Shown here piece by piece: positions 1,333-15,035 of a DNA stretch of 64,000 nucleotides (position 1 is the first letter of the stretch; the number at the start of each line of letters is the position of its first letter). Where the stretch lies: positions 1 through 64,000 of the forward strand of contig DF237451.1 in the NCBI GenBank assembly GCA_000708835.1, in the 5' to 3' direction. Origin of the DNA: Klebsormidium nitens. Lineage: Eukaryota; Plantae; Klebsormidiophyceae. Position numbers and translations under genes: made by a program. The notes below the pieces were generated by a model. The model was not told the DNA's origin. It was given only the letters and a program-made list of their open reading frames with translations, and searched no databases.

Positions 1333-1824
1333 TCATGCACCTAGCAGCTTGGGCGTAATCTTCTCATTGATGAGCTTGTACACCATGAAGGGCCCCTTGG
1401 GTCCGAAAGCGTAGAACACGGCCCCGATGATTGCCTCCAGCACGTCCGCGCAGATGTCGTCACGCACAGTGCCGTACTCGTCCTTGACGCTCGGCGTGGC
1501 CTCGTTCAGGATCACATGCCCGTCCAGCGCGAGCGCCCGCAGGTAGAGCGCGTTCACGGCGTTGCGCGTGAGCGCGGCGCGCATCTCTGAGAGGAGGCCC
1601 TCGTGCGCCCGGGGGTGCAGCTCGAACAGCCGGCTGCTGATGACGGCGTTGAGCCAGGCGTCGCCCAGGAACTCGAGCCGCTCGTAGCTGGGCAGCCGCA
1701 CGCCCAGGTACGACTCGTGCAGGAACGCCAGCGTGAGGCACCGGTCCAGCATGCCGTCGCCCAGCTCCTGCCCCGCGGCCGCGCCCGCCTCCTGGCTCGC
1801 CGCGAAACCCAGCTTGGTGCGGAC
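1333..1824 (-). other. RNase III domain (last exon of the fusion gene)
   Basis: FLHESY...YERLEFLGDAWLNAVISSRLF...HEGLLSEMRAAL...CADVLEAIIGAVF. The signature E and D plus the downstream D..E acidic pair are all present. The ORF stops right after the domain, with no dsRBD. Confidence 0.93.
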
Positions 1825-4800
1825 CTGCGACGCACGGGGGGGACGGAGTGAGCCGAGAAGCAGGCGAGGCGTTGTGCGCCGCGACAATTTGACAGCAGTC
1901 TACTCTGAAATGGTGCCGAAACGCCTTGTAAATGGAGCACAACTGCAAGCGGGACCGATCATGAGGCCATCTCGATGTCAAAAACAGCGCACTGAATGCT
2001 ACACCGCAGCAACTGGGTTGGTGGGCTCGCTGCTCGTCGTGCGCGCAGCGGCTGCGGTGCGCTGACCTGCGGCAGGTGCTCTGCGGTCCACCAGCGCAGG
2101 CGGTCCAGGAATTCCTCCGGCAGGCTGACACGCGCGCTGCGCTCGGGCGGCGTGCTGTCGGCGCGGGTGAGGGCGGCACGCGCGTCCTTGCGCAGCTCGA
2201 CCGGCTTCTTGGGCACCGTCACCGGGCTGTACCCCAGCTGGTTGCAGATCTCGAGCGCCGTCTGGTCGCCGCCGCCCGCCTGCGCCGCAATGTACTCGCG
2301 CAGGCTGCCGTACTGCCGCGCCACGAACTGCCGCGCGTCGATCTGCAGCATCTCGCGGTCGTACTTGCTGCTTGGCCTGCACCACCAGCGCTGCGCATCA
2401 GCACATGCACGCTAGCACGATCGGGTGGCGCTCGTCATTGTCCAGCGGTTGTTAGCAGTATCAGGAGCAGCAGGCAGACGCTGCGGCACGCACACATCCT
2501 GTGAGCAGGGCTGTCCCACCCGGGCCCCCCTGTTTGGGACTACGGGACCCCGGCCCCGTTGCCGCTGGTACTGTCGCGTGGCCTCACCCCGCCTCGTCGT
2601 CCTGCAGCTGCTGCGCCCAGTCGTCCCGCAGGGCCCCGCTCTGCCGGTCCCGCAGCATGCCCCGCTGATTGCCTCCAAACTGTTCGCTCTGGCAGTCCCG
2701 CGCGATGTGGCCTCCCTCGCCGCACTTGAAGCACAGGCGGCCGCCCCCCAGCGGACAGTCGCGCGAGATGTGGCCCTCCTCCCCGCACTTGAAGCACGTC
2801 CGGCTGCCGCTGCGCACCACGAGGGAACGACAAAAGGTTCAGCTATGCCCGACTGGAGAAGAGGGGGACGCCGTTTAAGAGAGCCCTAAAAAGTTGTGGC
2901 CAGGGAAAGCATGCGCTTGTCCTCGCCCAACACCTTACCGCGGCCGCCTATTGGGCCCTCTGTCGAAGTATAATGTCAGCATCGTGCGAAGCGCCTATTC
3001 CTCCTCTGCACGAGCAGAGACCGTCACGCTTTGAAGCGGGTCCCCTCCTGGGTACCCCCCTATTCGCTTACCTGGTCCGCCCCGATGCGCTGGGCGCGTA
3101 GCCCTCCTCCGGCAGCGGCCCCTCCGACATGGCCGAGTCGCCCTCCCACGCCTTGCCCGCCTGCCCGTTCATGCCTGCCCACGCCACACGGCGCGTCAGG
3201 GAACGTCCGCTCAGAGCAGCGGCCCCGCATCAAATCCAGACGCGTGAGCATTGAGGTCTGGTGGTGCACCAAAGCGGAGAGACGACCTCAATCAGCACAG
3301 GTCAGCTTAGAGCAGTAGGCATATCGATCGGGGGGTCACCTTGTGGTTCGCCCCAGCCATTGATGGTGTCGTCCTCGTCCTCGCTCATGAGATCGTCCAC
3401 GGTGAAGGCTCCCGACAAGATCCACGCCTCGTCCACCGCGTTGATGCGCACATTCTTCTTCAGCAGCAGCTCGCGCGTCAAGTAGTCCTTGTTGTACAGC
3501 CCCTGCCACGCCCCGCACGCACCGCGTCAGGCAGGAATGCAGAGAACGGAGGAGCGAAAGAAGCGAGAGAAAACAGAGGATCTTCAAGGCTGCGCAGAGG
3601 AAATTGATCTATGTCGAGATCCGCTCAGTGTGCAGTCGTAATCTTGAAATGTGACAAGCGAGGCCAGAGACTGCCCAGTTTCGGTCCGGCGGTGTATATC
3701 ATCCCAGGCAACGCGCCCAGCCCCAGTTGTTCGGTGCGGGTGCTCCGTGCGCCGCACCTGCATGGCGAAGGGGAGCAGGAAGTCCTCGAGGCGCGCCACC
3801 ACCTCCGCGCGGTTGCCCAGCCGCTCGTCGATCACAGCGCGCGCCACGGCCTTCACGATATCCACCGCCGTCTCCAGCTCGCCCGACCCACGCTGTGCGC
3901 GGCGGCCGCCCTTGAGGGGGTCGTCCGCCTCGAGCGCGCGGAAGAGCGTCTTCTGCTCCTTGGCCCAGTGGCAGCGCCGGCTGCCCTCCACCTGCGCGAC
4001 CACGTCGCCCGCAGCGTTGCGCAGGCGGTACGTCACCTCCAGCTTCTCCACCGCCACCTCCGCGGCCTCCACCAGCGGCAGCAGGCACGCGTGGCGCACG
4101 TCCGCCGCCTGGAACTCGGGGCCCGCGCCGTGCGCCTGGGACGAGAGGAAGCCCATGACGGCCAGCATCAGGCTGCGCCCGATGACGGGCTTGATGGCCT
4201 CCATGGGCGACGCGGCCTGCCCGCGCGGGATGGGCAGCTTCACGGTGCGCCCGGACGGCGTGACGATGAGCGTGCTGGCGGTGGTGAAGAAGCCGGCGCC
4301 CATCTCGTGGTAGATGGCGAACAGGCTCGGCAGCGCTGGGCCGCTCACCGCGCCGGGCTGCCACGCCACGGGGAGCCCGGGGTGCGCCTCCGAGAACAGC
4401 TGGCGGCAGGACGAAGCGAGGAGCGGTCAGTATGATACTCGTAAAGACCCATGCATCCTTGCAGATAACACCGTAGCGTTTCAGTGCTCCTCGAGAGGGC
4501 AACGAGGCAGAGTTTGCGGCGCCGTCCCTGTTGCTGACTTGGTCGGGGCGGCGCACCTTCTCAAGGTTGAGGTCGTCGGGGATGAAGGCCTCGACGCCGG
4601 GCTTGAGGCGCACGAAGTCGAGCTTGGGCTGCTTGGCGGGCTTCTTGGGCGACGGCGGCATGCCGTCCTGCCACCCCGACTCGGGCGCACTCTCGTCCGC
4701 GTCATCGGACGGCGTGCGCGCCGTCACGGGCACCAGACCCGACCGCTTGAAGTCCTCCCACTCTTCCTGCAGTCTGCACCGCAAGCAGGCCGCGGTCAGC

Positions 4801-13800: not shown

Positions 13801-15035
13801 CCATCATATCTGCACCGTGGGTCCCTTGTATACTTTTGAGGTGACTCTTGACAACAATTTATAATCTGCCTCCAGAACTGGAACCTTCCCCAAGCGGAAA
13901 AGGAGGATCTTCAAATGTCATAAGGCCAACAAAAAGAAATAATATATTACTGTTCAAAAAAGTGGAGCGGACGTGACTGGATTGTCACCGGTAAGGCATT
14001 AAAAGAAGAAAAGGTGTTCTCCAAAACTTCCTGCCAGTCACACTTCTGTAGGACAAGGAGTGAAATTGAAAAGCCAAAAAATAGAGGCTGAGCTCGACAC
14101 CGAGAAAGCAATCTTGAGCGAATCAAAAAACAGATTAGAGCGAGAAGATTATCAGCGGGATCAGTATTAATGACATATAGAAACTTCCTGAGGTAGGCAT
14201 GAAGACACGAGGCTTCCAGGAAGGTGACCCAAAGTCAATTAATGAAGTAAAACGGTTGCTCTCAACCGTCTCTGCAGTACATGCTATGGTAAAGCTTATG
14301 TTTTCTCTGAGACGCCGTGGTTTGCAATTGCCTACTGCGTGGTTGATTGAATTGAGGAGCCCAGTAAGAACCCCGCAACAGACGGACTTGCTCTGAAGTC
14401 GTGGTATTCTTACACAGAACAGGATATTCAGAGTTCCATTCCGAATTTTTCATTTTCAAATTGAATGCAAAAGAATGGACGGATGAGGGCGCCCTTCAGT
14501 GCCTCTCCAAAGTCATTGGGTGTCACCATGGTCGTTAAGGAGCTACCCAGCTTTGAACACCACCACTCAACAAGCAAAAGTTCTTGAAAAACTCTTGGCC
14601 ATCAGCAAGCGTACAAGCTGATGATAAACACTATGCAACAGCAAGAATGAGCCAAAAGTTTCTCAAGAGATCTTTCAAAATTCAGCTCAATCGACAACAC
14701 GTTCGCCCTGCCACCACCTACAACACAGCGGCACTGCGTCGATTGCTTCCTGAGATCGGAAGGTGCAGATGCAAGATAAGAAAGTGCACTGTTCTCAATG
14801 CTACAGCAATCTTTAGTAACCGCTTGCTGGACAGTCACTGGATCTGAGTGGGTTGACAGAGGAGCAGACATCATAAAGTTGCTGTCAAAAGACCAGGTAA
14901 GACGAGGATTGTGGAAAAACACTCATCTGCAAAAACAGAGTTTGTAGATTGAAAGGAGAGCCTCAGCCAACTTCACTCGGCGTACCTGATACGTTCAATG
15001 TGCTGCAGGGCCGTCTTGCTCGCATCAGCATCCAT
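1333..15035 (-). CDS. Sacsin/NOV-like GHKL ATPase - 2x CCHC zinc knuckle - RNase III fusion protein (~1755 aa, 27 exons)
   Basis: Hand-spliced exons, in transcript order: 14986-15035, 13358-13465, 12893-13092, 12412-12465, 12146-12209, 11121-11375, 10541-10775, 10151-10294, 9518-9791, 9141-9285, 8702-8897, 8347-8484, 7807-7969, 7535-7631, 7065-7282, 6632-6810, 6283-6390, 5946-6088, 5458-5667, 4985-5122, 4557-4773, 3758-4399, 3340-3502, 3072-3174, 2588-2809, 2067-2376, 1333-1824. All introns are GT-AG with compatible phases; total 5268 nt = 1756 codons including the stop. N-terminus HIERIRRDKFGLGG..NPLAGDMHQAV..LYQKETHFILELIQNAEDNSY..FNNEVGF..NVDALCSVG..GYIGEKGIGFKSVF is the sacsin-like HATPase pattern. 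Individual splice sites (e.g. 9518) are less certain than the overall model. Confidence 0.85.
2588..2809 (-). other. Two tandem CCHC zinc knuckles (exon 25 of the fusion gene)
   Basis: CFKCGEEGHISRDC-PLGGGRL-CFKCGEGGHIARDC; both match CX2CX4HX4C. Confidence 0.92.

Follow-up and report, generated by a model that had tools for sequence, protein, structure and literature searches.

The DNA analysed here, called the window throughout, is a stretch of 64,000 nucleotides of the alga Klebsormidium nitens (contig DF237451.1, positions 1 to 64,000), in which the minus strand carries, from 15035 to 1333, a run of short open segments with a high G+C content at third codon positions. A preliminary description of the locus had joined these segments into one frame of 27 exons and 1755 amino acids, and a rebuild performed independently of that exon list arrived at the same numbers: a minus-strand gene with 27 exons coding for 1755 amino acids, from an ATG at 15035 to a stop codon at 1333-1335, in which all 26 introns are GT..AG, the acceptor is CAG at 25 of the 26, and no internal stop occurs. 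The predicted protein consists of a Tiamat-like sacsin-repeat body with GHKL motifs at its N-terminus (residues 1 to ~1361), followed by an acidic linker, two zinc knuckles, a pre-domain and a terminal RNase III domain. The features of the gene were as follows (aa, residues of the predicted protein; profile, the profile of 13 homologues used in building the model; P0003 and L002, a lycophyte homologue and a contig of a related alga, both treated below).

1155..15228, minus strand: mRNA span, approximate ends; coding sequence from 15035 to 1336; RNA contigs end at 1123-1157
14986..15035, minus strand: exon 1, aa 1-17, start codon; donor CAG/GTACGC
13358..13465, minus strand: exon 2, aa 17-53; profile and tblastn to P0003
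12893..13092, minus strand: exon 3, aa 53-120, with the N-box ELIQNAEDN (13053-13079) and NNEVGF (12927-12944)
12412..12465, minus strand: exon 4, aa 120-138, first half of the G2 box
12146..12209, minus strand: exon 5, aa 138-159, second half of the G2 box (GIGFKSVF)
11121..11375, minus strand: exon 6, aa 159-244; manual reading, tblastn and profile
10541..10775, minus strand: exon 7, aa 244-322, ending ...VYAFLPTE; donor 10541, +36 bits against the homologue profile
10151..10294, minus strand: exon 8, aa 323-370, INADFLL motif
9518..9791, minus strand: exon 9, aa 371-462; donor 9518, +35 bits jointly with exon 10
9141..9285, minus strand: exon 10, aa 462-510; acceptor 9285
8702..8897, minus strand: exon 11, aa 510-575; donor CAG/GTGCGC at 8702
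8347..8484, minus strand: exon 12, aa 576-621; codon bias and profile
7807..7969, minus strand: exon 13, aa 622-676; codon bias and profile
7535..7631, minus strand: exon 14, aa 676-708; collinear in L002
7065..7282, minus strand: exon 15, aa 708-781; 3' boundary from an RNA contig loose end at 7066
6632..6810, minus strand: exon 16, aa 781-840; RNA joints
6283..6390, minus strand: exon 17, aa 841-876; RNA joints
5946..6088, minus strand: exon 18, aa 877-924; RNA joints
5458..5667, minus strand: exon 19, aa 924-994; RNA joints
4985..5122, minus strand: exon 20, aa 994-1040; RNA joints
4557..4773, minus strand: exon 21, aa 1040-1112; RNA joints
3758..4399, minus strand: exon 22, aa 1113-1326; RNA joints; C-terminal sacsin-repeat body, aligning to the C-terminal part of AT3G48770-like proteins
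3340..3502, minus strand: exon 23, aa 1327-1381; RNA joints; the body ends at about aa 1361 (3398-3400) and the acidic linker begins
3072..3174, minus strand: exon 24, aa 1381-1415, acidic linker; RNA joints
2588..2809, minus strand: exon 25, aa 1415-1489, CCHC knuckles at 2755-2796 and 2692-2733; RNA joints and Pfam zf-CCHC
2067..2376, minus strand: exon 26, aa 1489-1592, pre-domain with the L-x-W-W...L-P motif, WW at 2088-2093
1333..1824, minus strand: exon 27, aa 1593-1755 and stop, RNase III; ERLEFLGD at 1660-1683, DVLE at 1435-1446

Transcript evidence was obtained from Logan contigs of four runs, from four studies and under two organism labels, which were placed on positions 1000-6900 of the window. 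Each of the four runs yielded one contig of 5576-5639 nt that spanned 6811 to ~1155 in 12 blocks with 11 skips, and 11 of the 11 skips were CT..AC on the plus strand, corresponding to GT..AG on the minus strand. The exons joined in this way (15/16 to 27) form one open frame of 975 codons closed by the stop at 1333-1335, in which the coding sequence of the sacsin-like body leads without interruption to the knuckle exon (2588-2809) and on to the RNase III exon (1336-1824), indicating one gene and not two. The earlier claim that the body and the knuckle/RNase III exons share a transcript was thus upheld, the main RNA species in the four runs splicing both together rather than as separate transcripts. 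The loose end of an RNA contig at 7066 fixed the junction 7065/6810. Exon 1 and the 5' untranslated region (UTR; 14986-15165) were covered at 1.00 by the RNA contigs of 18 runs, and the intron-containing region 1000-6900 at ~0.5, which equals its exon share. Run X10, which bears the other organism label, was alone in giving two extra contigs that leave the window at 1563 and 6698, their loose letters being absent from the window.

The 15 upstream exons were modelled with a dynamic program based on codon bias and trained on the RNA-confirmed exons, followed by manual reading of the sequence and by scoring of GT/AG pairs against the profile of 13 homologues. By itself the program produced two spurious, very small exons at the 5' end, overlooked exon 5 and set several junctions wrongly, all of which was corrected by hand and with the profile, and the refinement on the profile shifted three junctions (the end of exon 7, exons 9/10 and the end of exon 11). 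GC donors at junctions 7, 10 and 12, for which a greedy refinement gained 4-5 bits, were rejected and consensus GT donors preferred; a version of exon 11 with a 61-nt intron was likewise dropped, the donor at 8702 giving a 217-nt intron and removing 52 junk residues. The model starts at the first in-frame ATG past an in-frame stop, and its first residues align to the N-termini of homologues. Coding sequence and 3' UTR add up to 5446 nt, against 5576-5639 nt in the RNA contigs, and the remainder of 130-193 nt corresponds to a 5' UTR of normal size, so that no large exon should be missing or surplus. The 5' UTR contains an upstream open reading frame (ORF) of 27 codons (window 15083-15165, minus strand, start at 15165), and another upstream ATG lies at 15232, at or just past the 5' end of the longest RNA contig. 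Intron 1 (13466-14985) measures 1520 nt, against 157-770 nt for the remaining introns; the ORFs of intron 1 and of the region upstream of the gene (13596-16678) gave no Pfam match.

The N-terminal part of the protein had been assigned to the sacsin/NOV-type GHKL modules, an assignment sustained by its motifs. The body scored 773.5 bits against the local profile of the 13 homologues, 12 of which had a SACS match. The GHKL N-box ELIQNAEDN, at residues 58-66 (E58, N62, D65), is identical to that of the aligned plant and bacterial members, and the G2 box GYIGEKGIGFKSVF at residue 130, encoded across exons 4/5, is of the family type GxxGxGFKS. In a BLASTP comparison, residues 9-1351 of the model aligned to residues 22-1372 of the orthologue P0003 with 32% identity (E 0), and P0003 itself matched both the SACS domain (PF25794, E 2.6e-9) and the PADLOC model for the Tiamat protein TmtA (E 1.4e-100). 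No transit peptide was evident at the N-terminus, which aligns from residue 1 to cytosolic/nuclear-type homologues.

In the window protein a tether of roughly 230 residues connects the body with the RNase III domain. It comprises the acidic linker at residues 1362-1414 (13 D/E, 2 K/R), two CCHC knuckles (C-x2-C-x4-H-x4-C) at residues 1420 and 1441, matched by Pfam zf-CCHC (PF00098, E 8.1e-18, 64 bits, cut-off 20.8), and a pre-domain of 103 residues with an L-x-W-W...L-P motif that is common to P0003 and to a further plant protein, P0014. The pre-domain had no sequence match in Pfam or the PDB, and a hidden NOV_C remnant in it was rejected, hhalign against NOV_C regions giving a probability of 0.2%. 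NOV_C (PF13020, a PD-(D/E)xK fold) had no Pfam match in any tail exon, and the protein was therefore classed as Tiamat-like, not as Tiamat or NOV.

Exon 27 matched the Pfam RNase III family (PF00636) with 65 bits, against a cut-off of 27, and an E-value of 1.2e-17. The complete catalytic set announced for it is in place (E1640, E1643, D1647, N1680, D1719 and E1722, with ERLEFLGD at residue 1640). Across 35 aligned RNase III domains the columns R49, E51, G54, D55 and E75 were invariant and E130 nearly so; the window protein has all of these residues, the Diphasiastrum residues are all present, and P0014 has Gln at the first catalytic Glu, as do several further rows of the alignment. Sequence matches of the exon in the PDB were to Drosha, Dicer and bacterial RNase III, the best being human Drosha and Giardia Dicer (E 2e-15). 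An AlphaFold2 model of the exon reached a predicted local distance difference test (pLDDT) of 87.7 and a predicted template modelling (TM) score (pTM) of 0.85, and Foldseek related it to solved RNase III domains with a probability of 1.00 and TM scores of up to 0.82, the best structural matches being the bacterial nuclease domains of Campylobacter, M. tuberculosis and Aquifex RNase III (TM 0.7-0.8). Only ~10-30 residues follow the RNase III domain. In agreement with the preliminary description, the Pfam scans of the exons gave no match to a helicase, PAZ or double-stranded RNA-binding domain (dsRBD), control Dicers being positive in the same scan. No second RNase III domain was present either.

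When 1.84 billion representative proteins were scanned in full with HMMER, the RNase III exon serving as query, two long proteins were returned that have one RNase III domain each, at the C-terminus: P0003 and P0014. P0003, from the lycophyte Diphasiastrum complanatum, has 1695 amino acids and is annotated as "hypothetical protein"; a second locus of the species, on a different chromosome, likewise codes for 1695 aa, and there are several isoforms. Over pre-domain and RNase III domain the window protein and P0003 share 37% identity. P0014, of 1902 amino acids, comes from an assembled plant contig (L001), where nearly the whole body and the RNase III domain lie within one uninterrupted ORF of 1902 codons, excluding an artefact of the gene model in that plant; the missing N-terminal GHKL exon lies just upstream. 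The P0014 gene (L001:2454-8709), which lies next to a gene of plant type for an F-box-associated beta-propeller, is nearly intronless, a short 5' intron being followed by a single 5.7-kb ORF, whereas the algal gene has 26 introns.

L002, a metagenome contig of a related alga, carries an orthologue that is collinear with residues 654-1755 and contains the knuckle exon. This orthologue has two extra introns, one in exon 22 (4675-6358) and one in the RNase III exon after residue ~1682 (9454-10237), a difference from the window that is due to recent gain or loss between close relatives. P0003 and P0014 are devoid of zinc knuckles, which suggests that these were added in the algal lineage; the knuckles named in the preliminary description are present as two CCHC motifs, but as part of the architecture they are confined to that lineage. 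Word-based homologue searches with the P0003 tail and with P0014 found no further fusions, and no large cluster joining SACS and RNase III was found in the ESM Atlas. A metagenome contig of another alga contains a stretch of ~75 codons with ~88% identity to the front half of the RNase III exon (L003:9950-10195), 4.6 kb downstream of a coatomer-beta gene and accompanied by neither a sacsin body nor the second half. It was rejected as a stand-alone RNase III relative, being an exon-sized fragment with stops upstream, and looks like a pseudogene fragment.

In the RNase III tree, built without named Mini-III sequences, the three fused domains formed one clade with support of 100/96 and, judged from this grouping, are of single origin. 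They fell outside the group of the two-domain proteins, and their nearest non-fused rows were short bacterial-type metagenomic RNase III proteins, on weak branches (92/83 and 82/84). The body tree, obtained with a quick method, with long branches and rooted on the NOV_C-bearing (Tiamat/NOV-type) group, placed the RNase III-bearing proteins as a basal grade, with the alga and the lycophyte together, then P0014, and then a truncated liverwort protein with the angiosperm AT3G48770-like clade. The two trees, both of them small, agree, and the simplest reading is that one ancient fusion took place at the base of the AT3G48770-like family, the tail being lost towards the flowering plants. The proposal that NOV_C had been replaced by RNase III holds with respect to the deeper NOV/Tiamat outgroup but not with respect to the AT3G48770-like relatives; since these closest relatives of the body have no NOV_C, an effector swap is valid only at the level of the wider family.

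Comparison of the window with L002 (synonymous divergence, dS, ~0.6) gave ratios of nonsynonymous to synonymous substitution (dN/dS) of 0.09 for the RNase III domain, 0.16 for the pre-domain, 0.19 for the knuckle exon, 0.20 for the body and 0.29 for the acidic linker. By these values the tail is the most constrained part of the gene, and the RNase III domain, as judged from the substitution pattern, is under strong purifying selection.

Two preprints of 1 October 2026 provide the framework in which this protein can be placed. One links NOV of plants with Tiamat, an antiphage protein of bacteria, assigns to AT3G48770 a BED finger, a single sacsin repeat and a beta-sheet motif, lists PD-(D/E)xK, LOTUS, HEPN and zinc-finger domains among the varied nucleic-acid-related domains of sacsin-repeat proteins, and reports developmental roles of NOV together with raised levels of potato virus X (PVX) upon NOV knock-down (bioRxiv 10.64898/2026.09.30.755639). 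The other reports ATPase and single-stranded DNase activity of Bacillus cereus Tiamat, predicts that both of its ends dimerise as in GHL clamps, with a C-terminal domain proposed to double as dimer contact, and regards the effector as interchangeable, the nuclease being replaced in Tiamat-like proteins by helicases, HNH-like folds, Schlafen-like plus peptidase, Het-6, CDK, LOTUS or J plus HEPN domains (bioRxiv 10.64898/2026.09.30.754977). An RNase III type of Tiamat-like or sacsin protein was absent from both preprints, from an HEPN survey and from plant small-RNA gene surveys. The principle of the effector swap is therefore already known, and no description of the RNase III variant was found in the literature searched; the earlier statement that no such architecture had been described stands for that literature, with the qualification that unnamed hypothetical proteins of Diphasiastrum complanatum are already in the databases.

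The interpretation favoured here is that of a real, expressed single gene, whose product combines a Tiamat-like GHKL ATPase with a class-1-type RNase III effector and probably acts as a homodimeric, ATP-coupled nuclease for double-stranded RNA (dsRNA). RNase III domains that occur singly require dimerisation for activity, and GHL ATPases dimerise through their N-termini upon ATP binding, with a C-terminal domain holding the dimer together. With one RNase III domain per chain, the cutting of dsRNA would need a homodimer. The C-terminal RNase III pair, which would occupy the position predicted for the dimerising nuclease of Tiamat, may serve both as a constant dimer contact and as the Mg2+-dependent site of dsRNA cutting. 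Binding of ATP would bring the N-terminal ATPase domains together, so that they open and close the other end of the dimer, and the solenoid body, in this alga together with the knuckles, may bind RNA or a ligand, by which cutting would be coupled to the ATPase cycle. The three nuclease-type effectors of the family (PD-(D/E)xK, HEPN and RNase III) all need dimerisation, which fits a clamp model. ATP gating and an antiviral or transposon-directed role, both suggested in the preliminary description, would fit the clamp proposed for Tiamat (bioRxiv 10.64898/2026.09.30.754977). The most likely role would be Dicer-independent surveillance or processing of dsRNA, whether in defence or in housekeeping.

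Several observations weigh against this interpretation. Dimerisation, dsRNA cutting and ATP coupling are inferred for every member, and the want of a dsRBD among the Pfam matches leaves substrate binding unaccounted for; bacterial Mini-III and Giardia Dicer function without a dsRBD. Junctions 1-14 were placed by homology and splice consensus, without reads, and the body exons, scanned one by one, matched neither Pfam nor PADLOC. The G1 box, NNEVGF at residue 103, has the form NNExGF instead of DxGxG, so that of the full set of GHKL boxes claimed earlier the N-box and G2 are canonical and G1 is not. The departure is family-wide, the same G1 and G2 variants being found in the alignment in NOV_C-bearing proteins of Vibrio and Shewanella, and because these bacterial relatives share NNExGF and ATP hydrolysis is reported for a bacterial Tiamat, it was considered the norm of the family and not a defect. 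Lastly, a second RNA contig, found in 4/4 runs, shares exon 23 (3340-3507), departs at 3507 and continues for at least 255 nt that are absent from the 64-kb window. Intron retention was excluded for it, the divergent sequence occurring nowhere in the window, and it may represent a stray exon copy or paralogous fragment transcribed elsewhere, a minor isoform or an alternative 5' part.

The possibility was also considered that the fusion is artificial, two neighbouring genes having been connected through read-through, in the assembly or in the exon model. Logan contigs are assemblies, and a contig over two genes does not prove a single transcript, but all exons from the body through linker and knuckles to the RNase III domain are separated by spliced GT..AG introns, with the frame kept open and the same layout in four runs. 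The fusion moreover recurs in the related alga, at two Diphasiastrum loci and in the single uninterrupted ORF of P0014, with concordant RNase III and body trees, and an artefact is excluded for practical purposes. A different objection takes the RNase III domain to be a non-cutting module for dimerisation or dsRNA binding, the protein then being a dsRNA sensor or scaffold. The failure to find a dsRBD or any other domain that would position dsRNA speaks for it, as do the dimer contact proposed for the C-terminal domain of Tiamat as well and the angiosperm relatives, which dispense with the RNase III domain entirely; against this, neither the alga nor Diphasiastrum lacks any of the catalytic acids or the conserved Asn, P0014 alters the first Glu alone, and the domain has the lowest dN/dS of the gene (0.09). 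A role without cutting was held to be improbable.

The two halves could also be independent, the fusion merely targeting a constitutive RNase III to the binding site of the body, with no gating by ATP. A long, acidic and probably disordered tether, of 100-530 residues in three lineages, speaks against tight mechanical coupling, and the sequence holds no demonstration of allostery; the ends of GHL dimers usually communicate (bioRxiv 10.64898/2026.09.30.754977), a weak counter-argument by analogy, and independence of the halves was judged unlikely on balance. As to function, maturation of housekeeping RNAs (e.g. rRNA or organellar precursors) instead of defence against viruses or transposons is a possibility, if not a likely one. 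A moderate k-mer depth and RNA contigs of at least 18 runs from at least 6 studies suggest constitutive expression, the nearest non-fused relatives (on weak branches) are short bacterial-type RNase III proteins, and the relative NOV has developmental roles, all compatible with such a task. On the other side, the family of the body includes a bacterial antiphage protein, NOV knock-down raises PVX, no transit peptide is evident in the N-terminus, and the loss of the tail towards the angiosperms would be less expected of a core function than of a dispensable, conflict-type one. The favoured interpretation may be extended to make the protein the founding member of a further class of eukaryotic RNase III, an ATP-gated homodimeric GHL clamp with a Tiamat-like defence protein as its forerunner, which would have preceded the plant AT3G48770 family as its ancestor and would act in algae and early land plants as a Dicer-independent sensor-effector against viral or transposon dsRNA; this extension is speculative and was considered quite unlikely.

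Sacsin-repeat proteins such as human sacsin, plant NOV and bacterial Tiamat are tied to disease, development and immunity, and their substrates are poorly understood. A conserved member that bears an RNase III domain and is under purifying selection points to dsRNA as a target of one branch of these proteins, and offers the AT3G48770 group of flowering plants, so far uncharacterised, a first hint of function. For RNA silencing it is a green-lineage RNase III enzyme outside the DCL and RTL families, and since RNase III activity is simple to assay, the proposed coupling of the ATPase to the nuclease should be easier to study here than in Tiamat. The fusion of body and RNase III is old, being present in an alga, a clubmoss and another plant. 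It is less singular than first thought.

Among known systems, the class 1 bacterial enzymes share with the window protein one RNase III domain per chain and give the closest folds, and short bacterial-type proteins are, with weak support, the nearest rows of the tree; Mini-III, like the window protein, has no dsRBD. In contrast to the bacterial RNase III and Mini-III enzymes, its domain terminates a eukaryotic multidomain protein of 1755 amino acids and follows a WW-containing pre-domain unseen in them. Dicer/DCL and Drosha are likewise eukaryotic RNase III enzymes, and human Drosha and Giardia Dicer gave the best PDB sequence scores, but the window protein has neither helicase, PAZ, platform nor dsRBD, and its one RNase III domain precludes the intramolecular pair of Dicer and Drosha. 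Plant RTL proteins are short and consist of RNase III and dsRBD(s), unlike this long protein with no dsrm match.

The AT3G48770-like angiosperm proteins (~1700 aa, uncharacterised) are the closest relatives of the body, with 27-29% identity over ~900 residues (E down to 1e-88), are collinear over their whole length with residues 6-1358 of the model and belong to the same clade of the body tree; they end where the body ends (~aa 1358), without linker, knuckles, RNase III or NOV_C, and AT3G48770 differs further in its N-terminal BED zinc finger. Human sacsin also combines a sacsin-repeat ATPase with a C-terminal RNase-type domain (HEPN) that must dimerise, but has three repeats and ends in J and HEPN domains, whereas the window protein has one repeat and ends in knuckles and RNase III. 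Tiamat and NOV share with it the SACS-type GHKL ATPase (ELIQNAEDN, NNExGF, GIGFKSVF), the long body of helical repeats and a nuclease tethered flexibly at the C-terminus, and differ in the effector, which is a PD-(D/E)xK NOV_C domain (DNase) in Tiamat and NOV and an RNase III domain, the fold of a dsRNA endonuclease, in the protein from Klebsormidium nitens.

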